Assembly (NCBI GenBank): GCA_946965045.2
Contig: OX337235.1
Span: forward strand, 1,240,001-1,304,000
Direction of reading: 5' to 3'
From: Epithemia pelagica
Taxonomy: Eukaryota; Protista; Bacillariophyta
DNA: 64,000 nt
In this document: one piece after another, positions 15,201 through 58,082 of the stretch
How the letters are laid out: each line of letters starts with the position of its first letter
Position numbering within the stretch: position 1 is the stretch's first letter
The notes under the pieces: model-generated
What the model was told of the DNA's origin: nothing
The model's input: only the letters and a program-made list of their open reading frames with translations
Databases searched by the model: none
Program-made: the position numbers and the translations under genes

Positions 15201-18200
15201 ATCGATCGGAGGAACATCATTCTCGGACAATGTAGAAAGTTTCGCCCAAGACTATGGAACTGTTGGCGACACGGATCTGGCCATTCCGGCATCCGCAGTA
15301 CAATCACCGACCTCGGGAATATCGTTGGAGCAACATTTGAAGAAGCAAAAAAGCTCTAGCAGTATGAGTGTGGGTTCGTCACCAAAGAGCCGAACTAATA
15401 TGACTCGCGAGGCAAGCAGTCGTAGTCTTTTGGACCTTCCGAGCGATCATAGTCCGGATGAAAACAAAGACGAAGTCGAGAGCATTGATTCTGTAACCAG
15501 AAGTGGTGTTAAGGGTGTTGTCAAGATAGAGGAAGAAGAAGAAGAAGGCGCTGGTGACGAAGACGAAGAAGACGAAGAACAAAACGAAGAAGACGAGACG
15601 GAGGAGGAAGAACAGTGGAGGATGATGATGGAAGAGGACGAGGAGAATGAATACGAAAGCGAAGAAGAAACCGAGCACGAAAATCAAGACAGTTTAGAAG
15701 GAAACGATAGCGATCGCAAACTAAATCTTAGTGCGGGTACTCTCGGGGACGACACCATGTCTGTCAGGAGTAGTTCTTTTGGTAACAATCCATTGGCGCT
15801 GAAAGACTTTCGACAAGCCTATTTACGCGAATCAAGCTTCTCTAGTCGTGGACTCAAAGACTTTCATCAAATTTATCACTCGGATGCGAACTCAACCTTG
15901 GGCGACAATATGACTGTCGGTTCGAGATCAAACAGTGGTGAATCTTCGGTTGCTAGTAGCATCGAAAGACACATCGTGGAAGTAAGGGGCCTTGATTTGA
16001 CCTCCTCGTCGTCACTTTCTAGACAGAGTCCATTGGCGATGTCGGACTCTCGCCCTTCCTCTCTTGGTTCAATGCTAGAGTCGCAACGAACACATTTGCG
16101 CTCGCTACCAGAAACTCGGCGTTCTTCTCTTGGTTCACTGGAGCACCGACGGTCTTCAATTGGCTTGAAGGATGAGCCTCGACGTTCGTCGCTTGGTTCT
16201 TTGCCAGCATCTGGAGTCTCTTCATCCAGCGGTTCGGGGATGACGAGGACAGAAACTCTCAAGATGTCAATCAATAAGGCATTGAGGGACTACGAAAAAT
16301 TGTATGGAGAAGAAGCCGCACGCGGAGCCTATATGAAACTGGCACAGGCAGTGTTGATGGATGGCAGTTCACAACCAGTGACCGCGCCGAAAACAACGAA
16401 CAAAGAAAATAGGAGTTTGACATCAACGCTACCGACGGTCCCACTGTCCCCAGAAACTCCTACAAGGGAAGATACAAGCTTCTTGTCAACAGAATCAACG
16501 CCATTTTCACCCTCTCCTCCCACACTAAACAAAGAGAAACCACCAGAAACTCCAGCTACCACACAAACATCTGTAGCAATAGCTACACCTATCGTTTCTA
16601 ATACATCTTCTTCGAATAATAACATGACGAGCTCCAGAGGATTGTCTCCGCTTCTAAAGGGTTTTGGGAAAACCAAGCCCTCTTTCTCTGATGCCAATGG
16701 GGATTTCCCTGTTCGAGGGAATCAGCTGGTACGGTGCACGTCCCCCAGTTCCCATTCTTCATGGGTGACAGGAACTGAACACAATTTGCAGTATTCACCA
16801 ATGTCTGACCATATTGATCAAGCGGACGAAACCTTGAGATCGATCCCTCGAAACAACGTACAAACGACCACCGACATGAGAATCGAGAAAGATCTGCGAA
16901 AGCTGCAGACTTCTGACAATCAAAATGATAGAGTTTTGCCTGATACAGGGCAAAGGGAGGCAAAGGAGAGAAAGGAATGGGTACCTTTCCCAAAGGAAGC
17001 TGGTACAAATGAGGCGTCACTGAAGCAGTCAAAGATCGCAATATCCAAAAGTGTACCAAATACTGTGTCCGTTAAGACAGACCCTTCCATCTCCATTGAG
17101 GGTGCAGGAGGGGAAACTGATGTTTTTAAGTACTCAACATTGGGTTCACCTCCCTCCTCAAAAGGACTAGAACAACCGGAAGGAGCTGATTCCAACAAAC
17201 TGAAAGAAAGTGCCGGGATATCCAGAAACTCTGTTCCTTCAGTGGTCTCCGTACGCAACGACAAAATGTTTCCTGCATTGGTATCTGTACAACACAGCCC
17301 GTCCGAGAAAGTTGGTCCAACACAGATTGAAAGATCGAATATCAAATTACATACCTCGATTCCGTCCGTGGTCAATGTGCCTCTACACGAAGAAGAAACA
17401 AAAGACGTCACAGTCGTCAATAGTAAGATGCACCAACCAATTCCAGCTGTGGTGTCTGTATACACAGAGGAAACAAAAGACTTGGATGTAGAGGGATCTT
17501 CCGATGATTCGTTTCCGAAATCTGCCCCTCCAGAGACCAACGCTCAAGGAGACATAGAAGAGGCTGGAGCCTCCTCTAATTCAATTTGCGAATCACCTGC
17601 TGCTGCTCGTGGACCAAATTCAAAGAAAGACTGGAATCCTCTTTTACCGTCCCAAGGTTATGGTCTGCAATCTTACGCCCCCTCGGTAGCTGCCAAGAGG
17701 GATATCGTAAATCGTACAATTTCGCTTACAGATCCAACTGGAGATGAAGGAGCGGAAGGATCTCGGTATCTCCAATATCGGTCCGTACTGGCACATAGTT
17801 CCGTCGCACTTTCTCCGTTGTCTCGATTGCTGAACTTTACGTCCACCAGCGGAGAGGATGTGCAGAAAGACGCAATCCCTGATCAGGAAGGACTGAATGC
17901 ATATGAGGGCGAAAACAACGCGAAGCAACTCTCTGTGGACGAACCAGGAGAGGTTCCCGAGCGGAATAGTGTCAGCTTGACCACGAAGGCTGGTAATGAC
18001 TCGTCTGCACGTGTGTCCAGTTACCAGAACTACAGAAATTTGCTTGTCAACGCTCTATCGACTGGAAAGATTTCCATGGAAGAGCCAACTCAGACTCCTA
18101 CTGCGCTTTCTCCTCCTTCGGCAAGTGAGCCTTCGGTACCGGTGGAAAGTCCTGATCGTGTGGAAACGCCAGGAATAAAATCCGCAGGAGCCCCTCGCTA

Positions 18201-20642: not shown

Positions 20643-22330
20643 TTACAGGGTCGTCGTCGTCCCTTGTCCACCTGCAGCAACATCCACCGTTGTGGCAGTC
20701 ACCCCACCACTGCTGGTTCGAAGAGGACGACTCCTCTGGTGCGTACGACTATTCTTGGGACGACCCGTTCGTTGCCGGGACAAGGCTTCGACGTCTTGTC
20801 GTTGATACAAGTAGTGGCGTTCTTTGGATTCGGCCCGTTTGCAAATGCCTTGAATGCCGTGATAAAATTTGCGCGTCAAGGTATCCAAATCCAACCCATT
20901 TCGATCATGACCAAAGGGATTTTCAATTTCACACACCATACTTTCCACACCCCACACGGCATAGGCCACAAGATTGGCCAAGACAATGGCCCACCATCCA
21001 TAATATTCAGCCCCGTGCAGGGGAAACAAGACAAACCAGACAATCAAAAAGAATCGGAGCAACAAGACATAGGAAAGGGGCAGGGGTGTATGGACAATGC
21101 GTTCACAGGTTCCCAAGGCGTCACTCATGACGGACAAACAGGTGAGATTAATCACTTCGAGTTGCCGGTCGGATAATTTGCCCGTTTCGGCTTGATGGGC
21201 CAAATATTGCGACATGACATCTTGACAAAAGAGGGGCATGTGTTGCGAATGTTGAATGTTGGCAATGTCTTGATGACACAAGGGGGGTGAAAAATGAGAA
21301 TGAGAATGAGGATCCTCATGAGGATTGTTGGTGGTGGTGGTCCTGCTGTCATGAGTATTGGCGGTCGCAGTGGTCATGCCCAAGGCTTGCAAATCCCGAC
21401 GAATGTCACGTTCCTTGCGCAAATGGACCTTACAGGCCACGGCAAAGGCGGCGGCAAAATAGACGGCTCGTCGACGATCCAAGACATCGTCATAATTGCG
21501 AACCTTGACATGAGCACAGACCAAGCGCGCAAAATCCAATACCTTGCGGATACTTTAGAAAGTATAGAGACAAGAACAACAAGCAAAATTCGCAGGAGCA
21601 GCAGTAGAAACATCCAGGGTGGTTTGTCCCATTTGGTTGTGAATTGAAAGGGTAAAAATTGTGAGCGAGAAAAAAAACGACAACATGCCAAAAACAAAAT
21701 ATTCTTTGAGAATCGACGTGTCCATTGGGCTGGTGATTGATCGGACTGTTCTTGTTCTTACCCTCCCCATGCCTTGCGTCCTTCCCAAAAGCGATTGTAG
21801 GCTTGATTGGCGCGGAAACTCAACAATAAAAACAAGCCAAACGAAAAGCCTCGCAAATCCATGTCTTCGTGCAACATGAAATCTTCCGAACAAAATTGTG
21901 CCCCCTGCACATCTTTGGGACTCCCACAAAAGTTGGTAAAGCGGGTCAAACTGACAATCACGACATTGTAGAGCCAAATGCAGTACAAAATTTCGCGATG
22001 ATGTTCGGGAAACCACGTCCGCAACGGTGGTTCCCACCATTTGTGGGAGGGATCGTACGTGACATTGCGATTGGGCGGTCGAACTTCCTTGGCACCCGCC
22101 TGAAAGGTTTCGACACTGCCAATCAAGGACAAGGAGGAAATGTCATCTTTGTCGGCTCCTGCATCCGGTTTGGTGGCTGGTGGTTGTTTCATGGTTGTAC
22201 TGTGTTGTTGTTGTTGTTGTTTCGAGGACGACGATACCAGTGCCGGAACACTGGCGGTTCGACTCGTAGTAGTGGTAGATTCTCGAGGAGACACGATCTT
22301 GGTAGTTTGCGTGGTCGTCGACCGTTTCAT
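20643..22330 (-). CDS. Bestrophin-like anion channel (RFP-TM/YneE-type), paralogue A; exons 22330-21762, 21552-20643
   Basis: LLLSFRANQAYNRFWEGRKAWG, CERIVHTPLPLSY and EIENPFG motifs. GTAAGA donor at 21761. AAG acceptor at 21553 restores frame (1479 nt), with one residue fewer than paralogue B at the junction. Confidence 0.8.
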
Positions 22331-23832: not shown

Positions 23833-25525
23833 TTACTTGCGGTCGGTTGCTTCAAACGATGACGTACTGGTTCGAGAGACCATGGGTGGTGGCGGTGCGG
23901 GTCCCCTTCTCAATGGCGCAGCCGCACCGGTATTTGAAGCATGGTGGTTGTTATTGTTGTTGTGGTTGTTGCTGGAGGTGCTGGTCGAAGATGACAGGGG
24001 TACGACGGTCGTCCAAAATTGATGCGCCAAATGACGATCGGAAATTTCTTGAATCCGTCGTCGATTGTAAATCAAATCCTTGTGTCGCGATTCCGACCGT
24101 CGCAAAATGGCTTGGGTATCCTTGTAAAAGCCCGCCACCATGGAATCCAAATCCAAATCGTTGCGTTCATGACCAAAGGGATTTTCAATTTCACACACCA
24201 TACTTTCCATACCCCAGACCGCAAAGGCCACGAGATTGGCCAAGACAATGGCCCACCAGCCATAATAATTGGCACCGTGCAGGGGAAACAGGAGGAGCCA
24301 CAAAATCATAAAAAAGCGCAATTGCAACACATAGGATAAGGGCAAGGGTGTATTGGCAATGCGTTCGCAGGAACCAAGGGCATCGCTCATGACCGCCAAA
24401 CAAGAGGTATTAATGACACCGAGTTGATATTCCGACAATTTGCCGGCTTCGGCTTGTTGTTCGAGATAATGCGACAGCACGTCTTGACAAAAGAGGGGCA
24501 TGTGATCGGAATGTTGAATATTGGCAATGTCTTGATGACATAGCGGCAATCCCAAACTTTGACAATCGCGACGAATGTCATGTTCCTTGAGCAAATGCAA
24601 TTTGCAAGCCACGGCAAAGGCCGTGACGAAATGAATGGCCCGGGCTCGATCCAAGACATCGTCCTCACACAACACCTTGACATGAGCACAGACCAAACGA
24701 GTAAAGTCCCGACTGACTTCGCGCATTCTGTGTGGGCCATCCGAATTGACCATAAACAAGAAGAAAACAACGACGAAACAAGTGCACAACAAATGTATCA
24801 GAACATACAACAAGACTGTGCAAATCTGATCCGTCGTTGTCGACTGTGCTGTCTTACCGTCCCCACACTTTGCGTCCTTCCCAAAAGCGATCGTAGGCTT
24901 GATTGGCTCGAAAACTGAGTAGTAAAAACAAACCGAGCGAAAAGCCTCGCAAATCCATGTCTTCGTGCAACATGAAATCTTCGGAACAAAATTGTGCATC
25001 GTCCACATCGGCTGGACTGCCACACAAATTGGTAAATCGGGCCAACAAAACGACTGCGGCATTGTACAGCCACAGCAGATACAAAATTTCACGATTTGTT
25101 TCGGGAAACCAGGCTCCGAGCGGAGGTTCCCACCATCGATGCGTGGGATCGTAGGTGACATTGTGATTGGACGGGCGAACTTCTTCCTTGCCCTGTTTGA
25201 AGTTATTCATACCACCAATCACGGACGAGGATTTGGTTTCCGACGACGACGATTCGGCTTCGTCGCCGCCACCGCGTGAATCATCATTGTCCTCCTGATC
25301 GTCCTCGTCACGATCGTCATCCAAACTTCCACCCCCTCCGGCTGTGGTGGTGGATGTGGACACCACTTCTTCTTCCTGTGTTCCACTATTGTAGCCTCGT
25401 CGAGTAGTTCCACCTCGAAAATCCGATGGTTGTCGCTGCCGTCTCGACTTGTGATGATGATGGTGGTGCTTGAGAATGAGCGGTACGGACGATTCTTCTT
25501 CGACAGTTGTCACGGGGGATGACAT
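23833..25525 (-). CDS. Bestrophin-like anion channel, paralogue B; exons 25525-24858, 24727-23833
   Basis: LLLSFRANQAYDRFWEGRKVWG|RMREVSRDF across a GT-AG intron (24857-24728). CERIANTPLPLSY and EIENPFGHERNDLDLD motifs. Intron is at the same position as in paralogue A. Confidence 0.88.
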
Positions 25526-45326: not shown

Positions 45327-46730
45327 ATGGAGCCGGCCCTTTCCACGACTTTGCCGGATTCGTATCATTCGACCAACGGCAATAAGGCATCCTCTGTGAC
45401 TGCCGACACGCCACAAGCTCCAAACCATGACGCCGTGTCGTCTCAACCACCATCCATTATCCAGCCATCGAAAAGTTATGATTCCAACGATTCGTCGGGG
45501 TCGTCCTCCTATATGCAATATCGTGCACGCTTGGCCCAACGATCCACCTCGTCCAAACTGTTGAGCAGCATGGAACCAACCACCACAACCACAACCAACA
45601 ACAACAATACTACCCAGAGCCACCACAAGACAGACACCGACCACACAGCTTTGGCTTCTTCTTCTTCCGACCCTCCATCCTCCCAGCAACCAGTTTCTCT
45701 CCCAACGGCACCACCGGCCGCGGCTGCCACAACGACGACGACCACAACAACAACCACAACGTCTGCACCAGCGTCCGCGGTCCCTCCGTATCTATCCTAT
45801 CGTGCCAGTCTGGCCACACGATATGGGTCACCCAGCAAACCATTTCGCAATAGTACTACCACAACCACCCACACGGTGGTCCCAACCACAAAGTCGCAAC
45901 CACCTCCCCCGCCTGCGTCGTCAACCACCATGGAGGAGCCGCCACCCGTGTTGTTGCCACACAACCCGTCGTCAGAAGGCGGGGACGAGGATCCGACACT
46001 GCTACCCGCCGTATCACCCGCCAACACACAGGAGGAGCCATCACCAGAACCACAACCAAACCAACAAGCCTCTGTTTCTCCCACGACTACGAATGCTACG
46101 GCCACACCTCGACTGGAAGAATCCTGGACCGATGAACATGCTCACCACGAAACTGGCATCCTCCACCACCACCACACTCCTCCGGAGGATCCCGAAGAAG
46201 AAAGCAGCAACCATGTACCAGACGAGGATGACACGATGGATGTGGAGCGTGGAGACACTAGGAAGGATTCTTCCTCCACTCCACCACAGTCGGCCATTGC
46301 CGTGGCCACGGCACATCGACGAGGACTCGAGCCGAATGCTCACGATAAGGACCCCCACATCACCACCACCAACAACAACCACAGCAAGACGGCTCCAGCA
46401 CTGGCACAACAATCCCCCTTGGCCAAAAAGTCCCAAACGGCCATGGATATGGAACAGGGGATGAGCCTTCCCCACAAAAGCCATACTACGAAACCACACT
46501 CCCCACCACCTCGACCAGCCGTGTCGTCCACGTCGTTTCCACAACACAAAGCCTCCACCAAGGACCATTCGAACGACAACGACAACGACGACGACGACAA
46601 GGACACGCTGTTCTCTGGGAGTCGCCGTCGTCGTCGGGAATGGATCCAACGAGGATTGGGCATTGGTTTGTTAATCGCCCTTCCCTTGGCGATTGGATTG
46701 GGTGTGACACTGCAAAATCACCATGAGTAA
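45327..46730 (+). CDS. Disordered S/T/P/H-rich protein with a single C-terminal TM helix and two YxxYRxxLAxR motifs
   Basis: 467-aa ORF ending RRRRREWIQRGLGIGLLIALPLAIGLGVTLQNHHE*. Confidence 0.65.
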   Translation: MEPALSTTLPDSYHSTNGNKASSVTADTPQAPNHDAVSSQPPSIIQPSKSYDSNDSSGSSSYMQYRARLAQRSTSSKLLSSMEPTTTTTTNNNNTTQSHHKTDTDHTALASSSSDPPSSQQPVSLPTAPPAAAATTTTTTTTTTTSAPASAVPPYLSYRASLATRYGSPSKPFRNSTTTTTHTVVPTTKSQPPPPPASSTTMEEPPPVLLPHNPSSEGGDEDPTLLPAVSPANTQEEPSPEPQPNQQASVSPTTTNATATPRLEESWTDEHAHHETGILHHHHTPPEDPEEESSNHVPDEDDTMDVERGDTRKDSSSTPPQSAIAVATAHRRGLEPNAHDKDPHITTTNNNHSKTAPALAQQSPLAKKSQTAMDMEQGMSLPHKSHTTKPHSPPPRPAVSSTSFPQHKASTKDHSNDNDNDDDDKDTLFSGSRRRRREWIQRGLGIGLLIALPLAIGLGVTLQNHHE

Positions 46731-47295
46731 AAGGTCACTCCACAAACAAACTATCCTTGCACAACCACCAAGAGACAACAACATCTGAGACGCGACACGG
46801 ATACAATACGGACCTCTTCCATTCGATCCATGGTTCTTTTTTCGAGGAGGAGCAATAAAGGAACACAACTCCACGTGGCAGGATCGGCATTTCTCCCTCC
46901 CCCATTCCCTATGGAATGCGCAAAATTGCAACTTTTCGTTGGAGGATCGTCCTTTCTGCGAAGTGGGCCATACGCTTGCCGAGACAAGAGAGCGTTACAC
47001 AATTCGCTATGAGCTGTGGTGTGATATCTCCACCAACAGTTCCATGTCGCTAGCTAGAGACACGGCGATGGACGTTGTTTTCGGTGCCTTTTTCATGGCA
47101 AAGCTGTAGCAGTACATTCCCATTCCATGGACCGGGGAGAACGTGGATCTTTAGGAGTGCATATCACATTACGAATAGGCTACCTAGAGAGCTATGGAGT
47201 CTCCAAATAAGGTAGAGAAAAATGAAGTCGCGTTTCGGTAGCTCATAGTGACCATCGGCCTCATTTTTGTGGTCGCGCGGAAGAGGCCCACTATT
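46698..47295 (+). repeat. Local segmental duplication, copy 1 (uninterrupted)
   Basis: Colinear blocks shared with 49461-49976 plus 57789-~57920: ttgggtgtgac..caaaatcac.atgagta, ttccattcgatccatggt, ctccacgtg, gctgtggtgtga, tttcggtgccttt, ggatctttaggag, tacgaata, gtcg.gtttc, ctcatttttg.ggtcgcgc. Confidence 0.8.
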
Positions 47296-47387
47296 TTGTA
47301 TCTTCATCATGATGAGACGTTGTGAATTGTGAACAAACCAAAAGTTCCGTCTTTGCGCATGTTTTAAACAGGCCAAACGATCCAACC

Positions 47388-49493
47388 ATGTCAACTCGTA
47401 GTAGCAGGGAAGTTGGGGGAGGAGACTCCTCTACCGGCAAGGGCAATCGTACCTTGATCTTTTTCGTTTGTTCGTTCTTGGCCGTGGTGGGTTTGGTGGT
47501 AGGACTGGTCCTTGGTCTCAGGAATCGCGAGAACGAAAATCAGGCACGCAAAAGCAGTTCAGAAGGAATTCAAGAATATGTCGTGGCGAGGGGCCTGTCG
47601 CCCTCGTCCGCCTTTGCCTCATCCACTTCCCCGCAGTCCAAGGCGGTGGAATGGATGGCGCAGGAGGATCCACAAAACTTTGCCACACCCGATGCATCCA
47701 TGGACATGAATACCAATGATCAAACATATCAATTTACCTTGAGATATGTCATGACGGTCGTGTATTATTCCACAGGCGGTGACACCGATTGGTAGAATAG
47801 TTTCAACTTTCTCAGTGACCGGCCCACCTGCGAATGGAATGACATTCATGAGCCCAGCACATGGCAAAAGGTTCGATTTGGGTTGCTTTGCTCCAATGAT
47901 AATGTCGTTGACCTCTTTCTTGGTACGTTCCTTTGTGCAACTTGGTGCTCTAAGGTGCTGTTTCTCACTTTTGGAACGAAACCTTGAACCTATCGCTTCT
48001 CATCCATGAACTATATAATTTTGTTGTACTTATGCGATACTGCAGATAAGTTGAATGCAATTGGTGCCATACCAGAAGAACTGGGTCTCCTAACGACACT
48101 AGTCAGGGTCGACTTTAATTTTAATGAATTCCTGAGCGGTACGGTCCCCGAAGCTATTTGCGAGTTGACCAATCTAGAATATTTGTCCATGGGATATACC
48201 GCTGTGGGAGGATCTCTTCCTTCTTGTATCAATAGGTTGTCAAACCTCAAACAGCTCTTTGTAAGTTGAAATGGTCGTATCGGACAATGTCAGTCATTGC
48301 TGCTACTGACTTGCGTGCCTTGTTCCCTATGTTGTCCTTTTCCGGAATACAGTTCCCCAATACCAAATTATCGGGACCATTACCGAATATGAGAAATATG
48401 GTAAGCCTGGTTTATATCTTTCTAGATGACAATGATTTGAGCGGTGATATCTCGACAGCCTTTAATTCCATGACGGAGCTTCGCTACGTTTTTCTGGAAG
48501 ACAACAAATTTACGGGCACCATTGACGATTCCTTCATGACGCAAAATCCGAATCTGTACATGTTGACTCTTTCCAATAACCCACTGGAGGGGTCCGTCCC
48601 GCCTCATTTGTTCCAAATACCGGACCTGGTTATGATTGATTTCCATGGAATTGAGGGTATTGCTGGCTCGTTCCCCGAGATTCCACAGAAAAATTCTGCC
48701 TTGTTGTTCATTGCACTTCATGGGTGTAGTATGAGAGGGCCCTTACCAGCAACGATGAGCAATTTGCCCAATGTTGTCCATCTCGACCTCTCCAAACAAC
48801 TTCAGTGGTGAGATACCAACAGAAATTGGAGCAATGACAAATCTGCAGTATCTGTTCTTGGCCAACAATCAGGGCTTCGAGCCGGGCCCCATCCCCGACA
48901 CCTTCAAAGAGCTTACTCAACTCAAAGAACTTTCTTTGAAGGGAACTCAGCGCTTCCAGAATCTTCCAGAATTCGTCTCGACACTTGGACGCTTGATTTT
49001 GTTAGATTTGAGCAGTAATGATATGTATGGAAAGCTTCCGTCGAGTTACGGAGACCTGGTGAACCTCCAATTCATGCTGTTGAACGGAAATGATTTCAGT
49101 GGGGAGGTTCCAACGTCATACGCCAAACTCGCCAGTTTGCGGGCCATGTTTCTCGAAGACAACGTTTTAACAGGCGATCTAACTCATATGTGCGCTTTGG
49201 ACACCTTCAAGGAACCTCGCGACGATGTGGACGGAACAGAATAGTTGGTGGCGGATTGCGATGGTGGCTTTATCGTTTGTGACTGTTGTATCTGTTGCAA
49301 CCCAAACAGCGAGAATGATGTGAACCCCATATGTAACGACAACGATATGGCCCCTAACCTAGATCCCGAGTGGGAAAGTGCATATGATCGCGTGGTGTAC
49401 ATCTTTGGAAACGAAACACGCTTCATTGACAAGAAGTTTTTACATGAAGGACAGCCGGACTTGGGTGTGACGCAGCAAAATCACGATGAGTAG
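47388..49493 (+). pseudogene. Type II membrane LRR protein pseudogene; exons 47388-47922, 48046-48260, 48353-49493
   Basis: N-terminal TM, then LRR cap and LRRs, then ADC...VCDCCICC cap. In-frame TAG at 47793-47795 (W*NSFNFLSDRPTCEW), frameshift at about 48794 (LDLS/NNFSGEIP) and in-frame TAG at 49242-49244 (GTE*LVADC). Confidence 0.85.
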
Positions 49494-49976
49494 CTACTTC
49501 ACACATTCGTTGAAGATTCACCAAGAGACAAATCCTTCTTTCAAAACGTGGATCCCTTCCATTCGATCCATGGTCCTCTCTTCGAATAGAAACGAGCATG
49601 TAACACGCCTCCACGTGACATGTTATGCACATTATTTGCATCCTCACCTTGAGATCATGAGTGAAGGCGTTTTCCATGTGGAAGTCAGCACCACATGGTC
49701 CCCCTTTGGAAAACTTTGGAAAAGTGTTGATGTTCCTGCCTGGTTCATAATTGGGTGATCGGTGATAGGCTTAGAGAAATGTGACTTGGCCTACCACACG
49801 AGAAGCCACTGTGCGATCATCAGCCTAGGTAGTTCCCAAGCTGTGGTGTGACGTCCACAAACAGTGCCATTGCCGTAGAGACTGCGGTACACCTTCGCTT
49901 TCGGTGCCTTTCATAAAGCGTCGCATTCCTATTCAATGGCCTGGATCTTTAGGAGATACTCCTACAGATCTTACGA
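49461..49976 (+). repeat. Local segmental duplication, copy 2, left part (continues at 57789 after the insertion)
   Basis: Matches 46698-47174 in colinear blocks. Confidence 0.8.
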
Positions 49977-50008
49977 TCTGTACATAGTACCGATAATATA
50001 ATGTTATT

Positions 50009-50203
50009 GATATCCGGACAACACGGGGTTATCCTGGGATAAGGGACCCACCCCCGCAGTCAATCACGTAGGATATGCGCCGATTTATCCCAGTCCAGTA
50101 AGCCCGGATCGGCTCAAAATTACCGACTAGAGCCATTTTTAACGGTTTTTCGTTTGATTTTCGCGCCTGCTCAACCACATTCCCAACAAATTACAACGGA
50201 TAA
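50009..50203. promoter_or_regulatory. Left subterminal cluster of GGATAA/TTATCC motifs (putative recombinase binding sites)
   Basis: ttatcc 50029, ggataa 50037, ttatcc 50085, ggataa 50198; near-matches at about 50010 and 50071. Function is inferred. Confidence 0.55.
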
Positions 50204-50349
50204 AACATTGGGTAAAAACCGTTATCATTAACCAGTGACGTACTTCTCAACCTATACTACATTTTGTCGTAGGTGATCCCACCATTCCCTGTAGGGCTTC
50301 TACATCACTTAAAGGCAGTATTTCTGGGTCTTTAATTTTTGACATCGTT

Positions 50350-50724
50350 CTATTTCGTTATGGGATATTTCTCCTTTACTATCTTGCGTTTTGTTCTCGG
50401 ACTCGATGGGAAAATGAGTTTGCGTTTTGTTTTTCCCAGATATGCTCTCCTTCCTTGCAGTGTCACGACTTCCTTCCCTTCCCTAATGGTTTCGTCAATG
50501 CATTCCTCCCTTGTTGTCGTGATGGGCAAATGGTCACCTGATGTCTGTCTTCTTTTTATTTTTTTCGTCCTTGTCGTTGTTTTGCTGTGTTCTGACAAAC
50601 CCATTGCTACTTGGACCGACATGGCAGTGACAAAGATCCTGTCACAGTCTGCACAGTTTCTGTTCCTGCATACGCCACACCATAGATAGCCCTCCTCTTG
50701 CCTACCACCCGTAGACTTCTCCAT
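50350..50724 (-). CDS. Small basic cargo protein with CxxC-x4-CxxC motif
   Basis: MEKSTGG...WCGVCRNRNCADC followed by a K/R-rich tail; short, so coding status is uncertain. Confidence 0.4.
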   Translation of the reverse strand: MEKSTGGRQEEGYLWCGVCRNRNCADCDRIFVTAMSVQVAMGLSEHSKTTTRTKKIKRRQTSGDHLPITTTREECIDETIREGKEVVTLQGRRAYLGKTKRKLIFPSSPRTKRKIVKEKYPITK

Positions 50725-51074
50725 TGTAGTCAGAGATGGTTTGTTTCGCTCCTTCACTCTCGTTGTTGCTTGCTTTTTCGTCTATTTCACGTCAAAAGTT
50801 TGCTTCCGAACCAGTATCTAGTCGTTAATTTAAATAACAACAACTTACATTTGCACGTGCCAACGTAGTATCAAGGTAAGATCCGGCTTGTTAAATTTTA
50901 TGAATAATTAATCGCGCCGCTAAATAGGTGGATGCTTGCGTTCTGTAATATGGTTTCTGACCGTTATACATCGGCATGCGCTAGACATTGTTATTTATGC
51001 GCGCCCCTATACAGGTTGATGCCTGCGCTGGTAGTAACTTGGCAGACAGAAATGAAAGAAAACAGTAAATCACC

Positions 51075-51524
51075 ATGGAAGACCACGACGACGAAAACAC
51101 TGTTACGACCTTCGACAAAATTCTCAACATGAATATGGATGACGATGCAAGTTCCGACCCGAGTTCCGACCCTAAGCCGAAGGATACATCGAAGAAAGAG
51201 GTTTCTATGGACGAATCGAAGGACAACTTGGATGATTTTTGGCCCGACGAAGAATCCTCCGTCGAACTCTCCTTTCTGAAAGACGAACCCGATCCTGCAC
51301 CTACGAAGGAAGATATGAAGAACGATCCGGAGTTGGTGAACCCAGACGACGTTGATTTTGGTCATCCGAATGACAAAATCACGGCCGTGATGTTACTTAC
51401 GAATGGTGGTACCATCCTCCATTATGGCTCGTCTCGTCGTGTCTACCAACCTCCGTACGACAATTCTCTGGAAAAAAAATACTCTCAGATGAAAATGGAA
51501 GATTTCTTTAATGTCAAAAAGTAA
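51075..51524 (+). CDS. Acidic cargo protein of unknown function (may be spliced)
   Basis: 149-aa D/E-rich ORF. Possible upstream intron 50877-51012 (gtaaga...tacag) and possible donor at the 3' end. Confidence 0.45.
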   Translation: MEDHDDENTVTTFDKILNMNMDDDASSDPSSDPKPKDTSKKEVSMDESKDNLDDFWPDEESSVELSFLKDEPDPAPTKEDMKNDPELVNPDDVDFGHPNDKITAVMLLTNGGTILHYGSSRRVYQPPYDNSLEKKYSQMKMEDFFNVKK

Positions 51525-51560
51525 ATTACTATTAGTTTATGTTTTTCTACTATTCTTCTT

Positions 51561-52322
51561 TTAGTACTTACTAGACCGGTTACGCACATTACGGTTATTT
51601 TCTGATTCTCCGCGACGGATACTGCGAAATCGATCTCTCTGAACTGTTCCTTCCAATCGTGATGACCATGATCCTAACGGAAGAACAAGGTAAAAATCTC
51701 TCGGGTGAACTGTGTTTGCATCTTGTCCTGGAATTAAATTCAACATGTCGTTGGACAAAGCGATCCCGGGCTTAAGCGACATTGGCGAATTTTCATTATG
51801 GGATGCCCGACGTACTTCAATTAGTCTCCGATCACTGTTAAATACATACCATTCTGGGAGAGTCGTTTTAATTCTCAATACGGGATTGCCACTTAGATAT
51901 AGGATCCTTGAGCATATGACTTGATAAATGATATTTTCCGACTCTCCGGCATCTTGTGGGAAAAAATCCATCGATTTAACATGGGTTCCATCCGGTATTA
52001 GTCGATGGAACCGGCACTCCGTTGTATACGTCTTCGTAGTACTTTCGGTCTTTTGGAAACTCCTGGGCGTGACATCTTCTCCCATTACATTGAGGATATC
52101 GTGTACTATCTTCTCGATTTCACCAACTCTTTCAACTTGGTCGCCATGGAAAGAGAAGTATTGGAGAATACGGTCGTTCCACGAGTACCGGATGTCCTGA
52201 ACTGGATCAGGATCCACGTTATAATGGCGACCTTCCAGGAAGGGCCATACTCCTCTCTGTGTATTCATATTCTTCTTCGAATTTTCTTCTCTTGAGATTG
52301 TGACATTCTCTATACTCTCCAT
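51561..52322 (-). CDS. Cargo protein, unknown family, paralogue 2
   Basis: 253-aa ORF sharing YFSFHG, RLIPDGTH and ILYLSGNPVLRI blocks with 52498-53364. Confidence 0.6.
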   Translation of the reverse strand: MESIENVTISREENSKKNMNTQRGVWPFLEGRHYNVDPDPVQDIRYSWNDRILQYFSFHGDQVERVGEIEKIVHDILNVMGEDVTPRSFQKTESTTKTYTTECRFHRLIPDGTHVKSMDFFPQDAGESENIIYQVICSRILYLSGNPVLRIKTTLPEWYVFNSDRRLIEVRRASHNENSPMSLKPGIALSNDMLNLIPGQDANTVHPRDFYLVLPLGSWSSRLEGTVQRDRFRSIRRGESENNRNVRNRSSKY

Positions 52323-52497
52323 TAGAACACAAGATGGTCGTGTATGTTACTGTGAAATTTCAGTCGTATTCATTCCTGCCTATATTTGTTCTGAAGATAG
52401 ACAATTATGTGTACTAAAATTTGGTGTTACTAATCAATTATGGCTAATTTATAGGACTCATTTTGTCCAATCACTGGTCTTCGGTCGTGTATGTGGC

Positions 52498-53364
52498 TCA
52501 AGGGTGAGGGTAAAAAGTTGTGACACCGGATTGCCCAATGGGACTCATGGCAATCGTACAAGCAACAACCACCTGGTTTGAATCAGATGGGTCTTCAATC
52601 TCGCGGGTTCCAAAATGTAGATATCCAGATACAGTCGCTGGCTCCATCAAGTGAATCTTACGCTCCGACATTGTGATTCGCACAGTAGGACATCCGGCAG
52701 CGTAGAGAATAAAGGTCTGGACAATTTGACAAGTGAAAACACGGCGAACGCGGATTTCTGGGTGCTTGATGTAGTATACATCTAAGCGTACCAGGTGAAG
52801 ACCATCTGGAATCCCGCGGCGATACGTCATCGAGTCTTCGTACTGTACTAGAGAGCGGGATCGGAACGACAGTACATCACCTTGTTTGTCAAGACGCGTT
52901 AAGAAACACTTGATGAAATCTTCTCCCTCACGCGTCGAATCTGGGACACGTTCAGTACCGTGAAAAGTAAAGTACCGTTTATACTTGCCTGGATCAAGAT
53001 TGCTTCCACTGTGGAGCACGGGCAACCCAAGTGGTAACGGATAGATTTGTCGACTGGTGAACGAATAGTTGTACGACACAACTGGGACAGTCACATTTGC
53101 AGAATGGACAGTTTCTACATTCTGCAAACTCACCGAACCAGTACCCAATCCAGAGTCGTTTGTCTCCGTCGGTGTCTCCGTAGGTGTCGTAGTCGTCTCA
53201 GCCGTGTCATTGGGCGGAGGCTTACGGTCTTCTTCGTCTTCTTCCTGCTTTGTGGGACGTTCCTCTTCTTTGACCTTCCCTTCTTTCGTCGGTGCCTTTT
53301 CATCATTGTCGCTATCGATTACGATAACATCGCCTGTCTTTTGTTTCTTGGGTGAAGACTCCAT
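52498..53364 (-). CDS. Cargo protein, unknown family, paralogue 1 (acidic disordered N-terminus)
   Basis: 288-aa ATG ORF with YFTFHG, RGIPDGLH and ILYAAGCPTVRI blocks. Confidence 0.65.
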   Translation of the reverse strand: MESSPKKQKTGDVIVIDSDNDEKAPTKEGKVKEEERPTKQEEDEEDRKPPPNDTAETTTTPTETPTETNDSGLGTGSVSLQNVETVHSANVTVPVVSYNYSFTSRQIYPLPLGLPVLHSGSNLDPGKYKRYFTFHGTERVPDSTREGEDFIKCFLTRLDKQGDVLSFRSRSLVQYEDSMTYRRGIPDGLHLVRLDVYYIKHPEIRVRRVFTCQIVQTFILYAAGCPTVRITMSERKIHLMEPATVSGYLHFGTREIEDPSDSNQVVVACTIAMSPIGQSGVTTFYPHP

Positions 53365-53532
53365 CCTTATTCAATTTGTGATTCCAATCAGCAAATTGTT
53401 TGATTGTTGTGTTTCTTTGTTTTTCTTGTTGTCTCCGTTGGGATAGTGTTTGATTCCTTGCAAGTGATTCAGAGTCGTGTGTTTGGTCCCTTTCTATCGT
53501 TGAGTTTGGAATTTCTGGGAAATTGTTGTGTT

Positions 53533-54222
53533 ATGGACGATTCCTCTCGACGTAGTTTCGTTGATTCGCCGCGACTTCCTCGTTGGCAGTTGGGGGATCT
53601 TGTGGCTGTCAAGTCACAGTGGTCCGTCAGAAAGGACCATTGTGGTTGGGTGACTAAACTCCCAAGTCCCGAGAAAAGAAAGCCACGTGTTACTGTCCAA
53701 TTCGCGGATGGACATAAAAATTCCTATGCCCCACAAAATTTGCGGGTTCCCCATAATGTCGATCAAGCATGGGCTATAATCGAGTCAAACCCACATTACG
53801 TAGTGTTCTGTAACGAGAACCGTACCGTGCAGAAGAAAAAGTCCGAGAATATCGTTGACGAAGGAATATCGGCTGAAGTTCCCCCAGATTTTACTACTTC
53901 TGGAGTTAGTGTTAATACACCTCCGAGTGATTATCGGCAAGATCCTGCAAACAACCGCATGGAGTCAATGTTACAAACGCTGGTGCAACAAATGGAACAC
54001 TTAAGTGTACGGATGGCCAGTATGGAACATCGCTTCAATGAGCGTTCGGGCCAACTTAACGAAGACGAGAGATCCGACCCACTTGACGATTACAGTGAAT
54101 ATACCAGGGAAGTTATCCTTCGAGGAGGCGATCAGTCGGTGGTCCGACCAGAAGATATAGCACAGTTTGAAAACGAGGAAGATGAAGAGGAAAGGAAAGA
54201 CGACTCTCAATTGACAGAGTAA
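53533..54222 (+). CDS. Cargo protein with N-terminal SH3/Tudor/KOW-like beta-barrel and a short coiled coil
   Basis: WQLGDLVAVK...GWVTK...RVTVQFADGHKNSYAPQNL pattern; MESMLQTLVQQMEHLSVRMASMEHRF heptads; acidic tail. Likely ATG is 53533. Confidence 0.6.
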   Translation: MDDSSRRSFVDSPRLPRWQLGDLVAVKSQWSVRKDHCGWVTKLPSPEKRKPRVTVQFADGHKNSYAPQNLRVPHNVDQAWAIIESNPHYVVFCNENRTVQKKKSENIVDEGISAEVPPDFTTSGVSVNTPPSDYRQDPANNRMESMLQTLVQQMEHLSVRMASMEHRFNERSGQLNEDERSDPLDDYSEYTREVILRGGDQSVVRPEDIAQFENEEDEEERKDDSQLTE

Positions 54223-54327
54223 GAATGTGACAGAGTAAAAACATAGGAATAATATGCTAAACAGGATGGATATTATGTAAAAAGAAGTCCCACCACCACC
54301 CGCCTTCAATGAGGCGACATCCTTGTA

Positions 54328-57300
54328 TTAGTCTTCCGTGCGTTTGCGCTTCCCCTTCTTGGCAATTTCTCCAGAACCTTGTAAATGCCGCAGTGCTCCA
54401 GCTACACCTTTCTTTTTCACGTATTGGTCCCATTCCGTACATTGTGCCTCCACTTGTGCATTCCACACACCGAATTCGACACCTGCTTTTGTTGCGATTC
54501 CTTTCAATAAAGCATTTACCCGTGAAAAGAAATTTTGGTCGGACGGTGAATAACCGGGACGCCACTTAGTCTTGTACTTCTTATCCAATGCTGCGAAACC
54601 ACCAGCTATAGGAACTCCTTCGTATGCCTCCAAACCGTAGAATTCTTGATAGATTTCGGACAGTGAAAGACTGGAGTTGTTGCCAACAAAACGACAAGAC
54701 AAAATTCTGTTAGAGACCATAGTAAGTTCGTCGTCAACTGACTGATCTCCATCAGTCAGAGAAGGAGGTAAAGTAACTTGTACTGTAGGTTGTTGGTCAG
54801 CTGGAGATTGTTGGTCAGCTGGAGGAGAAATTGCCAGGGGTGAGTACGTCTCCACTGTGAGAGTAGGCGTCGCAATTTGTGGGCTTTGGGAGACACCGGC
54901 TGGGGACTCGTTGGTTGGGGATTCGTTCTCGTTGGCGATATTTGTATGGGCGGCGACGACAAATTGTTCCATCTCTGTGGCACGCTCTGCTACTCCACGG
55001 GAAAAAAAAGAGCTGAGAGTAGATGTGAGTTGCAGTTGGCGTCGTTTGGCTTGTTCTGTAAGTCGAAGCTCCAACTGATGAAAGTTGTCAGCTTGGTTCA
55101 TCTGCTCCTCTTGCAACTGTGTGTTGACCTCTTCCATTGAGCGCTCTAATTTTACCACACCATCTGCAACTTGGTCGAATCTTTTGTTGAGTCCAGGGAG
55201 GCATCGATCAATCAGAACCACACTGGGGTCATTGTTGATATCGTTCTCTTCCAACAAGTGCTCGCGCATTGATTCGGTGAATGACCAAAAAAGAGGGGAG
55301 GAAAACATGGGAAAGCGACAAAACAGGTCGTGAGATAGTCGTTTTTTGGCACGTGGGTCTTCTGATGATTGTAGGAGGCAAATCATCGCAGCCATGTCTT
55401 GAATGAATACCGTCCGAAGAAACTTTAGGAACCTAAGAAATTCCATGGCTGTTGGGTGCTCTGGGGGAGGACGGTCGTCGTCGTCTCCGACATCCTCCTC
55501 TGTGTAACCAAGTGTGAAGTCTTCTGCACTGTCAAGCCATGGCCATACGAGATTTTTCACATCCTCCGGTACCTCCAAATTTCCACGAGGAAGCCAATAG
55601 CCATCTGAAACTTCAAATCCTGCCATGCATCGAATGGCAGATATCGGAACTTTGGCACTGTACCTTGATTCTTGGACATCCCGGTCCCAATTGCCTTGTG
55701 TAATAGGAACAATATAGTTAGATATGTATAGACAAAACGATGACAACAACATTAGGGGTGACAAACTTACCAAGTTGTTTTGTGAAGTCAGGTGACAGCT
55801 CCTTAAATTCGCAGTGAGAAGGCGCTGTGTGACGACACCAGTGGGTTACATGGTCGGATACTATACCAAGCTTTTTGAACACCTTCGACAATTCACGGCG
55901 GAAGCATTGCTGGTCCATTTGACGACAGTGGTCTGAACCAAGCTCGACCAACAATTTGATGTCAAACCATGATGAGTTGTCACGGAGGTCAGGAAAATTG
56001 TGCGATGGGACAAACTCAACGTTGGTTTGAAAACGGTACACTAGATAAGTCGCCAAAGCACCCAACGGACAGGTAAATACATCGCGGTGTCGTGTTGCGC
56101 GAGCGAATTGCGAAGGGGAATCGGCCTTGACAGTTTTTCCGGTGAAAAACTGCATGAGTACTATGTTCATCGAGTCGTGGTCTTGCTTGCATTTAATTTT
56201 GAAAACCCTTAAGTCCGACAATTCAGCGATATGTAAACTCTCGCTCCGGAGAATAGAGGCGTAATTCATGAGAAATGAGAAGCGGTTGCGAAGAGAAGTA
56301 AATGTGGTTCGAATAACGTTTTCGTCGCAACCAGCGAGCCAAAATACTTCTTCAATTTTTCCGACTAATTCCGTGTGTTCAAATGGCGAGCATTCCTTCA
56401 CTTTCTCTTTGTAATTCTTCTTCGCAACACGAGCCGACCGCCCCTGAGGAGTAAATCACTGGTTAGTTACACATTCATTTGAATCACAGTTCGGTTGACT
56501 ATTGTAGTACTTACTTGTACAATTTTCAAAAGGTTCTTGATGCTGGTTGTACAGATCTGTGTGTCCCAGTTGAGTGAGTTGCTTCCGTTCCCTTCTTCGG
56601 CCTGGTAATCATATAACTTGCGTATGGCGGAGCGATATGTTGATATGGACGAAAACCCTAGAGGGTTCCTAGGTTCCATTTCGTCCAGAATCGCAGATTC
56701 ATTACCAGAGATCGTACCGTTGTGTGCGTCGAGGATTGCCACATATTTGTCACATAGACGGTCATAATCAACAACGTTGAATACTCCAGGCTTTTTGTTA
56801 TTGGTTTTTTGGTCGCGGAAGACTTGGTAAAACATGAATTGGTACAATTTCTCACCAGTAACGGTGAAACGAGTACATTCAGTTTGCCAGTTGTAAATTG
56901 TAGCGCAGAAACCTCGAAACTCTAAAATACGATACTTATAAGCTTCGCGCGTGTTTTTTCGCATAAGAGTGTCCATGATCTGGTGTGTCACAGCACGCAT
57001 CTCCGAAACACTCATACGCATACGGGGTTGGGGAAGTACTGCACTCCCACGTACAGCCTCAAGCAACGACTGCGGTGGTGTACGACGAGAATTGGATGGA
57101 GGGTTCCCATTGTCATCGCCATGGACAGGATGGTTGTTGCTGGAGTTAGTGGAATTGTTTGTGTTTGGTGGATTTGTAGTTGCTGTTGTTGTATTGGTGG
57201 GAGTGGTTGGTGTTGGTGATAGTATAGGAAATAATATACGGCGATGAGTCGAGTGAGTAGTAGCTTCCTCGTCTCCATTCGTAGGCTGGTTGTCAGGTTG

Positions 57301-57402
57301 GGAATCCTCATTACGAGGATTACGACGACGAGTAGACGACGAGCGACGTGAGGAGGAAGCCGTGCCATTAGCCCGTTGCGTGGCTCTTTGCGTTCGCGGC
57401 AT
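54328..57402 (-). CDS. Crypton-type tyrosine recombinase (NDC10_II-like) with C-terminal GCR1_C DNA-binding domain; exons 57402-56515, 56443-55771, 55694-54328 (975 aa)
   Basis: Core-binding helix NTREAYKYRILEF. Catalytic set R (ILRSES), K (GKT), HxxR (THWCR), W (LG|NW), Y (SRYS). RHRDVFTCPLGALA motif. GCR1_C-like LSEIYQEFYG...LDKKYKTKWR...FFSR. Both introns are GTAAGT...AG and join in frame (2928 nt). Confidence 0.88.
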
Positions 57403-57654
57403 GACGATTGAATGCACAATAGGAAAAGTAAATGTGTTAATTTTTTATCTGTCTATCGAAAAGGTCAGATGATCGGCCATTACGGTCATCATTCGACTCG
57501 GATGAGCCATTTAGGTGCTTCAGGTAATGACTGTGGAGAGCATTGCCTGGTTTTTCGTCATTGCAATTGCTGGCGACTGCTATGGACGACATTGGTCGGC
57601 AGGCGTGCTTATCGAGCGTGCCACTCTCTACGTGCAACTACGGTGGATGAAACC

Positions 57655-57784
57655 TTATCCCAATACAAATAAGACTGTTTATCCAATGAATAATCATCGT
57701 TATTGGTCACGAGATAAGCAGTCTCAGGATAAAAAAGACGTTTGTGCGACTCAAATGAGGATAAAATTACTAAAATTTTTATCC
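57655..57784. promoter_or_regulatory. Right subterminal cluster of GGATAA/TTATCC motifs
   Basis: ttatcc 57655, ttatcc 57679, ggataa 57727, ggataa 57759, ttatcc 57779; the last two form an inverted pair. Function is inferred. Confidence 0.55.
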
Positions 57785-58082
57785 TGGGTACGAATAATAG
57801 CTATGTCGATGTCGGATTTGGTCGTGTTTCAATCGCTCGTTTCTCTGTACGGGATCAACGGCTCATTTTTGCGGTCGCGCACCACCACGCTTTTTCTCAT
57901 GCTCATCTCCCACTTTTGTTGTTGTTGCGAAATCTGTGCAGTTGACGTTGAGTTCAGCGTTCTGCCCAAAAATCCAAGTATATTGTTTGAACGGCAGCTG
58001 ATCTGGGTGCTTTATCGACTGGTGCAGTGGTGGATCGATTCATTCATCTTGAGTTCATCCACGGCAACACACAAACAAGAAC

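Follow-up and report, generated by a model that had tools for sequence, protein, structure and literature searches.

A hemizygous six-gene element in the diatom Epithemia pelagica, probably a Crypton-type transposon of an undescribed family

A 64,000-nucleotide stretch of the Epithemia pelagica genome (assembly GCA_946965045.2, contig OX337235.1, positions 1,240,001 to 1,304,000; hereafter the window, to which coordinates refer unless a locus is named) contains a 7.8-kb element that spans 49993–57799 and has a 6-bp direct repeat, ATAATA, at either end. The element encodes a tyrosine recombinase and five further open reading frames (ORFs) of 124–288 amino acids (Table 1). An earlier note, made from the letters of the window, had described this DNA as a cargo-carrying Crypton-like element. 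We find that it is one of several independently inserted copies, in the same genome, that share their ends and their six genes.

In the ORF list for 48–60 kb, the recombinase appears as three minus-strand ORFs (57417–56467, 56401–55718 and 55773–54328). Removal of two predicted GT..AG introns (71 and 76 nt) yields one open frame of 980 codons, or 975 amino acids from the first ATG at 57402, and the predicted three-exon gene is intact. The second and third pieces match the Pfam family NDC10_II (3e-18 and 2e-9) at profile positions 18–196 and 196–295, so that the matches are contiguous across intron 2, and the best NDC10_II score among members of the family is 1.8e-30. Weak matches to GCR1_C (0.032) and Phage_int_SAM_1 (0.026) were also obtained. 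The intact tyrosine recombinase with a GCR1_C domain proposed earlier was thus borne out as an intact, NDC10_II-type recombinase, but its GCR1_C part is only weakly matched. A Pfam scan of the eight ORF pieces reported no reverse transcriptase, DDE transposase, DUF3435 or C48 peptidase, and a sequence search of the PDB with recombinase exon 2 gave no match.

The five accessory ORFs are all present as the earlier note had them: a small protein with four cysteines (Cys4), an acidic protein, two paralogues (P1 and P2) and an SH3-like protein. None belongs to a Pfam family or has a match better than E 0.3. Their dissimilarity to host genes was likewise upheld, as no host paralogue was found and all placeable matches adjoin a recombinase of this Crypton-type family.

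Table 1. Positions in the window of the repeats, conserved ends and genes of the element, and of the flanking TACGA
Feature	Position	Strand	Description or basis
Left terminal direct repeat / crossover core ATAATA	49993..49998		Exact start of similarity to L002, L010 and L012; contig break and empty-allele contig at 49998
Right terminal direct repeat ATAATA	57794..57799		Empty-allele contig and copy comparison
TACGA in target flank, outside element	49972..49976		16 nt before core; inside empty allele; same offset in L012 flank
Conserved left subterminal region, ~250 bp	49993..50240		Four GGATAA/TTATCC motifs, including palindrome TTATCCTGGGATAA
Conserved right subterminal region, ~170 bp	57630..57799		Five GGATAA/TTATCC motifs, ending ...TTATCCTGGGTACGAATAATA
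Cys4 basic protein	50353..50724	-	LWCGxC-x4/5-CxxC, then KRKLLF and basic tail; listed ORF 50350-50757
Acidic protein	51075..51524	+	N-terminal TFDKILxM motif; C-terminal PCNA-interacting protein (PIP) box QMKMEDFF
P1, paralogue 1 of ~170-aa unrecognised domain	51561..52322	-	Basic C-terminal tail
P2, paralogue 2	52498..53364	-	Low-complexity N-terminus with SUMO-interaction motif (SIM) VIVIDSD
SH3-like barrel protein (fold from model)	53533..54222	+	Barrel residues ~15-75, then helices and long predicted helix (138-177)
Recombinase exon 3	54328..55694	-	End of catalytic domain (ESRYSAKVP), linker, conserved C-terminal GCR1_C-like domain
Recombinase intron 2, 76 nt, GT..AG	55695..55770	-	Predicted from sequence; Pfam alignment contiguous across
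Recombinase exon 2, catalytic core	55771..56443	-	ILRSE, TGKTVK, THWCRH; NDC10_II 3e-18
Recombinase intron 1, 71 nt, GT..AG	56444..56514	-	Predicted from sequence
Recombinase exon 1	56515..57402	-	Low-complexity N-terminus and SAM-like core-binding region

That the 7.8 kb form a discrete insertion, as the earlier note had proposed, is confirmed by a comparison of flanks, by read depth and by an empty allele. The joined left and right flanks align continuously to a paralogous 3' flank within the window (46690–47310), and because this alignment runs unbroken over the joint, the 7.8 kb represent extra DNA; the alignment backs the insertion but cannot separate TACGA from ATAATA as the repeat. The host genes upstream of the element form a diverged tandem pair, the second of leucine-rich-repeat type (45327–46730 with 46690–47310, and 48006–49244 with 49450–49976), whose 3' flanks are about 66–74% identical, and it is this similarity that makes an internal empty-site comparison possible.

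We also compared three public runs from the same organism over 49700–55699, two of which look like genome assemblies (longest contigs 443 and 509 kb). Contig depth in two DNA runs was 160 in the flank versus 81 in the element, and 137 versus 60–70, a half-depth ratio that fits presence on one of two homologues. The contig shared with the flank breaks at 49998, not at 49976, and one contig joins 49998 directly to 57800, reading on as GCTATGTCGATGTCGG..., indicating that the empty allele consists of the left flank, a single ATAATA and the right flank. Presence and absence thus occur between haplotypes of this organism, and the element is hemizygous, lying on one of two chromosome copies. Given the ambiguity of the repeat, the boundaries of the insertion are 49993/49999 to 57793/57799.

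These results revise the ends given earlier, which were 49972 and 57793 with TACGA as the repeat: the element in fact begins at 49993 and stops at 57799, and both of its ends carry ATAATA. The circle junction predicted through TACGA is not supported either, and the junction now expected is ...TTATCCTGGGTACGA-ATAATA-TAATGTTATTG.... TACGA as a terminal repeat is ruled out by the contig break, the empty-allele contig and comparisons of four copies, all of which lead to ATAATA. A second TACGA, at 57789–57793, falls within the conserved right end, directly beside the core. In target DNA, TACGA stands exactly 16 nt before ATAATA at two independent insertions, those of the window copy and of L012 (beyond 16392 in that locus), and not at three others; this recurrence may reflect a secondary cue in the target or simply coincidence (probability about 0.004, estimated post hoc). 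No terminal inverted repeats, long repeats or long inverted repeats were found in the element, and scans of the region for tRNAs and Rfam families gave nothing.

Further loci were found through searches with recombinase exon 2 and with a profile of the domain shared by P1 and P2 (the P domain), followed by context look-ups, and all of them lie in this assembly. With P2 as the query, a search of 5.8 billion proteins returned one homologue, located on another contig of the same assembly (ENA ERZ21939226). This locus, L002, carries in order the recombinase, the SH3-like gene (opposite strand), P2, P1, the acidic gene (opposite strand) and the Cys4 gene. The P-domain profile, searched against 1.84 billion proteins, gave seven matches, of which the five that could be placed are all in this assembly. 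At least three further complete copies (L002, L012 and L003) occur in unrelated flanks, and complete copies are 7.8–9.2 kb in size. Subfamily A consists of the window copy, L002 (7968 bp), L012 (7770 bp, with six ORFs open), L010 and L011, and subfamily B of L003 (9165 bp), L004 and L005, the last of which shows just the right end and the recombinase. Because the flanks differ in every copy, these are independent insertions and not segmental duplications. Copies with the same ends and the same genes, on which the earlier reading depended, are therefore found at unrelated sites.

Several of these copies also account for features of the reads. L010, truncated at its recombinase end, is 98.85% identical to L012 at a different locus, which points to recent movement. 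L011 is approximately 88–89% identical to the window copy and is without 51990–54626 and all sequence left of 50381; a joint of 51987 to 54627 and a loose end at 50381 in the reads are due to this derivative. The left junction of L012 accounts for the foreign sequence seen attached at 49993 in the reads. This complete copy has hAT transposase fragments on one side and an HhH-GPD glycosylase gene on the other (L012:1–4456 and 17330–17572).

Smaller related elements, about 4.3–5.5 kb and here called clade C, were observed at L006 (from 8629), L007:8632–14115 and L008:8426–12756. All three carry the recombinase, to which a convergent P-like gene is added in L007 and L008. The recombinase-side end of clade C (TCTTTATTTCGTGCCAGGCCAA) looks homologous to the corresponding end of the six-gene family, TATTATTCGTACCCAGGATAA. 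Two word-indexed searches found no relatives outside this genome, and a third gave only three clusters on short contigs. In JGI metagenomes, neither a recombinase profile nor an exact 20-mer from the right end had any match, and a search of IMG/VR found no relatives.

Outside its coding sequences, the element is conserved at the two outer ends only. Identity of the left subterminal region is 81–82% to L002, L010 and L012 and 73% to L003, and that of the right region is 88–91% to L002, L011 and L012 and 74–77% to L003, L004 and L005. The terminal 150–250 bp are accordingly 81–91% identical within subfamily A and 73–77% identical between subfamilies, despite saturation at synonymous sites. The 418 bp of the ends contain nine GGATAA/TTATCC hexamers where the frequency in the remainder of the window would predict 0.13 (Poisson P about 2e-14), and clusters of the motif recur in the ends of other copies. 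All readable left ends begin ATAAT(A/G), and the right ends that were read close in ...TTATCCTGGGTACGAATAAT(A/G), also given as GGGTACGAATAAT(A/G). Subfamily A has the core ATAATA wherever an end was read, on both sides of the window copy, L002 and L012 and on one side each of L010 and L011; in subfamily B it is ATAATG, on both sides of L003 and at the right of L004 and L005. Left and right cores thus change together between subfamilies, as is expected for the overlap region of a tyrosine-recombinase site, in which the partners must match.

The gene content is as constant as the ends. Clustering of all ORFs revealed that each complete copy keeps the five accessory gene families with hardly any change of order, and that their proteins are 33–65% identical across copies while synonymous sites are saturated. 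Compared with L002 and L010, the proportion of synonymous differences (pS) is 0.74–0.85, which is saturated, and the proportion of nonsynonymous differences (pN) in the accessory genes is 0.25–0.38. The ratios of nonsynonymous to synonymous substitution (dN/dS) versus L011 are 0.56 for the acidic gene, 0.44 for Cys4, 0.25 for P1 and 0.19–0.30 for the recombinase. The low pN beside saturated pS, together with these ratios, indicates that all six genes are under purifying selection, and the fixed content across copies identifies the five genes as a conserved accessory module instead of variable cargo. The comparison of copies supports the view that the five ORFs travel with the recombinase as one unit. 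Of the earlier description, then, the Crypton type and the joint mobility of the extra ORFs stand, but the term cargo does not, the genes being fixed and under purifying selection.

Exon 2 of the recombinase is 74–93% identical across subfamilies A and B and 58–60% identical to clade C; against L010, it retains 94% identity at a pS of 0.77, where synonymous sites are saturated. The candidate catalytic arginine (ILRSE), lysine (TGKT) and histidine (THWC) are invariant in all eight aligned copies, and the box II arginine (CRH) is kept in seven, L007 having Q at this position and then ending. A candidate catalytic tyrosine (ESRYSAKVP) stands in the consensus of six exon-3 sequences from subfamilies A and B. 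These residues were assigned by conservation and not by alignment to a solved recombinase. In L010:5812–7920 and L012:10001–12109, exons 2 and 3 form a single 702-amino-acid ORF in which the intron-2 stretch is read through in frame, so that either an intron without a stop is retained or this stretch is unspliced there. Matches to exon 1 lie about 1.1 kb apart in L003:8831–9977, which could reflect another insertion or a large intron.

Although no Pfam family covers the accessory proteins, some properties can be postulated from their motifs and predicted folds. Orthologues of the Cys4 protein were recognized in L002, L003, L004, L010 and L011, and the protein has no Pfam or PHROG match. Its sequence runs from LWCGxC-x4/5-CxxC through AYL..KRKLLF to a basic tail; KRKLLF may serve for cyclin docking or belong to a nuclear localization signal. 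The acidic protein has orthologues in L002, L010, L011 and L012, and the PIP box pattern Qxx[IM]xxFF is kept in three diverged copies, those of the window, L002 and L010, which end in QMKMEDFF, QKNIKDFF or QTKIDSFF. In subfamily B, the N-terminal TFDKILxM recurs in an ORF that separates the recombinase from the SH3-like gene and that is most likely the acidic gene, relocated and remodelled.

P1 is 60% identical to its counterpart in L002 and 54–55% identical to those in L010 and L012, and in an alignment P1 and P2 share about 170 amino acids with 21 invariant positions. The N-termini of P2 are unalignable, yet the SIM pattern, a hydrophobic core followed by an acidic/serine run, occurs in five of five orthologues, for example as VIVIDSD, IYILDSSSE, VIVLLGESSDD, LVIDLCDSAESDD and LFIDLCDSSETEE. 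The fold of the P domain was searched by Foldseek against the PDB and AFDB clusters, in the atlas and VIA-wide. Matches in the PDB, the atlas and VIA were mostly NTF2-like, none of them significant, and P1 and P2 are tentatively regarded as NTF2-like. A sacsin-related identity raised by an atlas feature search was set aside, as Pfam gives it no support, and so was a capsid or virus reading of P1 and P2, for which there was no significant match in BFVD or PHROGs and no relative in IMG/VR.

For the product of 53533–54222, the AlphaFold2 (AF2) model has an SH3-like barrel fold, with a predicted local distance difference test score (pLDDT) of 83–90 over residues 20–100. Residues 15–75 superpose on PsaE, NdhS and NusG-KOW with Z 8.6–9.3 and a root-mean-square deviation of 1.5–2.6 A, and Foldseek also lists Tudor and PWWP proteins (SETDB1, SMN and HDGF-related). 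A sequence search of the PDB with the SH3-like profile gave only weak matches, judged to be chance. Orthologues were found in L002, L003, L010 and L012.

Taken together, we consider it highly probable that this is an autonomous Crypton-type DNA transposon, belonging to a family with six conserved genes per member. From the anatomy of the element and the published behavior of Cryptons, we infer recombination at the ATAAT(A/G) core through a circular intermediate, and roles for the ends and accessory proteins. The recombinase would recombine the two ATAATA cores to release a circle with the junction ...GGGTACGA-ATAATA-TAATGTT..., also written ...TTATCCTGGGTACGA-ATAATA-TAATGTTATTGATATCC..., and the circle would re-insert by strand exchange with an identical target hexamer. 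Strand exchange at an identical hexamer predicts one copy of the core at each end and one in the empty site. By eye, there is a weak ACG/CGT symmetry around the core at the inferred junction. The 170–250-bp terminal regions with their GGATAA/TTATCC motifs may be binding platforms, much as the arm sites are in the att sites of phage lambda. The motifs and folds of the five accessory proteins lead us to infer that they control or assist recombination via host machinery: the SH3-like barrel protein may act as a chromatin or nucleic-acid tether, P1 and P2 perhaps form a heterodimer of NTF2-like domains in which P2 contributes a SUMO-binding motif, the acidic protein may engage PCNA by its C-terminal box, and the basic Cys4 protein may be a further helper.

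A number of points weigh against this interpretation. All placeable relatives come from one assembly. The introns of the recombinase are predicted, and expression of the accessory genes is presumed. The match to GCR1_C reaches E 0.018–0.032 in three of six members, under the Pfam 23-bit cut-off, and the presence of GCR1_C in 25 of the 100 nearest named atlas clusters (score 0.86) is a lead only. The resemblance of the family to CryptonF, its closest likeness, is judged by features. The degraded L011 has lost the PIP box and subfamily B lacks it, and the PIP box, SIM and KRKLLF are short enough that they could be chance occurrences or have other roles. The AF2 model of the P domain is weak (mean pLDDT 51, core about 73), and so are its structural matches (E 3e-3 or higher, template-modelling score 0.5 or less, best Z 4.5).

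Of the alternatives, an integrated nuclear plasmid, episome or capsid-less virus-like replicon, comparable in size and gene number to the yeast 2-micron plasmid and existing mainly as an extrachromosomal circle, would account for six small genes in divergent and convergent pairs accompanying a tyrosine recombinase and PCNA and SUMO motifs. On this view, the accessory proteins would act in replication and partitioning, through the PIP box, a chromatin tether formed by the SH3-like barrel and the long helix that follows it, and SUMO control; moreover, Crypton copy number rises in Chlamydomonas despite clean excision (bioRxiv 10.1101/2022.05.23.493040). In two DNA runs, however, the element is only half as deep as its flank, so that no multicopy circle existed in those samples. 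No replication initiator, capsid or partition protein was recognized among its proteins, a search of IMG/VR gave no relatives, and the long inverted repeats of 2-micron plasmids have no counterpart here. We regard such a replicon as improbable. It is conceivable, although doubtful, that the element is a eukaryotic integrating element of phage-like complexity, in which arm-like sites and accessory proteins acting on SUMO, PCNA and chromatin would time and direct excision and integration or keep a small nuclear episome.

Two further alternatives concern the origin of the extra genes. If a Crypton recombinase mobilized host-useful genes in the manner of a Starship, the five ORFs would be interchangeable passengers, and the presence of several genes beyond the recombinase, none with a recognizable transposition function, is compatible with this, as is a slight difference in content between subfamilies, the acidic gene being relocated and remodelled in B. 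The same gene families are nevertheless found in every complete copy across a divergence that saturates synonymous sites, no host paralogue was found, and the placeable matches all adjoin a recombinase of this family; the size is 7.8–9.2 kb, and no DUF3435-type recombinase was reported in the Pfam scan. The likeness to Starship cargo drawn in the earlier note is therefore not supported, and a carrier of this kind appears very unlikely. A composite, in which a recombinase-only Crypton landed beside or inside an unrelated five-gene element and the two are now bounded together by chance, might be suggested by the position of L012 beside hAT and glycosylase fragments and by the distant clade C, which carries just the recombinase and one P-like gene. 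Against such an origin, neither end has an internal copy separating the recombinase from the other genes, and the complete copies all share outer ends and inner order. A P-domain gene already stands beside the recombinase in clade C, indicating that the association is old, and we find a chance composite scarcely credible.

Other repeats occur elsewhere in the window. A tandem duplication at 20877–22055 and 24139–25151 is about 77–80% identical with a period of 3.1–3.3 kb (repeat families D3, D4 and D6), and 6660–7374 consists of six tandem units of 123–132 nt that are coding-like and rich in Q, E and L codons, possibly encoding a coiled-coil repeat protein.

Cryptons are among the least understood eukaryotic transposons, not least in how they are controlled, and have been seen as one-gene elements whose ends lack features. 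The six-gene family offers clean natural data in the form of precisely located ends, a hemizygous insertion alongside its empty allele, copies 98.9% identical at other sites and a co-changing core, and shows that a Crypton lineage can keep a five-gene accessory module over a long time. The module suggests testable links between transposition by the recombinase and host SUMO, PCNA and chromatin, and if the accessory proteins set the direction of recombination, they would provide a eukaryotic parallel to phage integrase and excisionase. The phage-like reading, if true, would extend beyond a large Crypton to a new class of multi-gene recombinase element in diatoms. A compact site-specific integration machinery native to diatoms could also become a genetic tool.

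We found no multi-gene Crypton described in the literature, including a 2026 CryptonA paper and the Starship literature. Known Cryptons carry the recombinase and at most one other gene, and the six-gene Crypton-type family is undescribed. The Crypton features present here are an Ndc10-type tyrosine recombinase, the lack of reverse transcriptase and DDE transposase, and 6-bp direct repeats with one copy in the empty site. DIRS and Ngaro elements differ in having reverse transcriptase, RNase H and split or inverted long repeats, whereas this element has neither reverse transcriptase nor long repeats. Starships, found in Pezizomycotina, are similar in having a tyrosine recombinase at one end, several genes and short direct repeats that reflect the target, but they have a DUF3435 captain, a size of tens to hundreds of kb and variable cargo, in contrast to the NDC10 type, 7.8 kb and fixed content of this element.

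The yeast 2-micron plasmid is similar in size and gene count and is controlled through SUMO. It differs, however, in its FLP-type recombinase, long inverted repeats and multicopy circle, whereas the element has an NDC10_II-type recombinase, no long inverted repeats and, at half the depth of its flank, no sign of a multicopy circle. Phage lambda-type integrases offer a likeness in how the element may work, with a short core, complex binding regions and small accessory proteins. Neither they nor the 2-micron plasmid have a sequence relationship to the element.

CryptonS elements lack GCR1_C, mostly have TATGG termini and sometimes carry one extra Ulp1-type peptidase gene, and Phaeodactylum, the sole diatom in the study that described them, carried CryptonS (PMC3212892). 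From diatoms, no Crypton group other than CryptonS has been reported. This family resembles CryptonS in its stramenopile host (oomycetes and Phaeodactylum among CryptonS hosts) and its short terminal direct repeats (5–6 bp in CryptonS), and the Ulp1-type SUMO protease of some CryptonS elements likewise points to the SUMO pathway. In place of TATGG termini and the absence of GCR1_C, however, it has ATAAT(A/G) and a C-terminus that leans to GCR1_C, with no C48 peptidase in the Pfam scan and five extra genes versus one. CryptonF elements combine the recombinase with GCR1_C and mostly have 6-bp terminal repeats (Kojima & Jurka 2011, PMC3212892); their hosts are fungi, oomycetes and Chlamydomonas (Goodwin 2003; PMC3212892; bioRxiv 10.1101/2022.05.23.493040). 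The active CryptonF-1_cRei of Chlamydomonas has CACCG ends, targets CAYCG and excises cleanly, only the target being left (bioRxiv 10.1101/2022.05.23.493040). Shared with CryptonF are the NDC10_II-type recombinase, 6-bp repeats that are single in the empty site, and the absence of inverted repeats and reverse transcriptase; the C-terminus resembles GCR1_C, with a match below threshold. The described CryptonF elements encode one protein, whereas this family encodes six, five of them orphan and conserved across subfamilies, between long conserved ends with motif arrays, and its host is a diatom.

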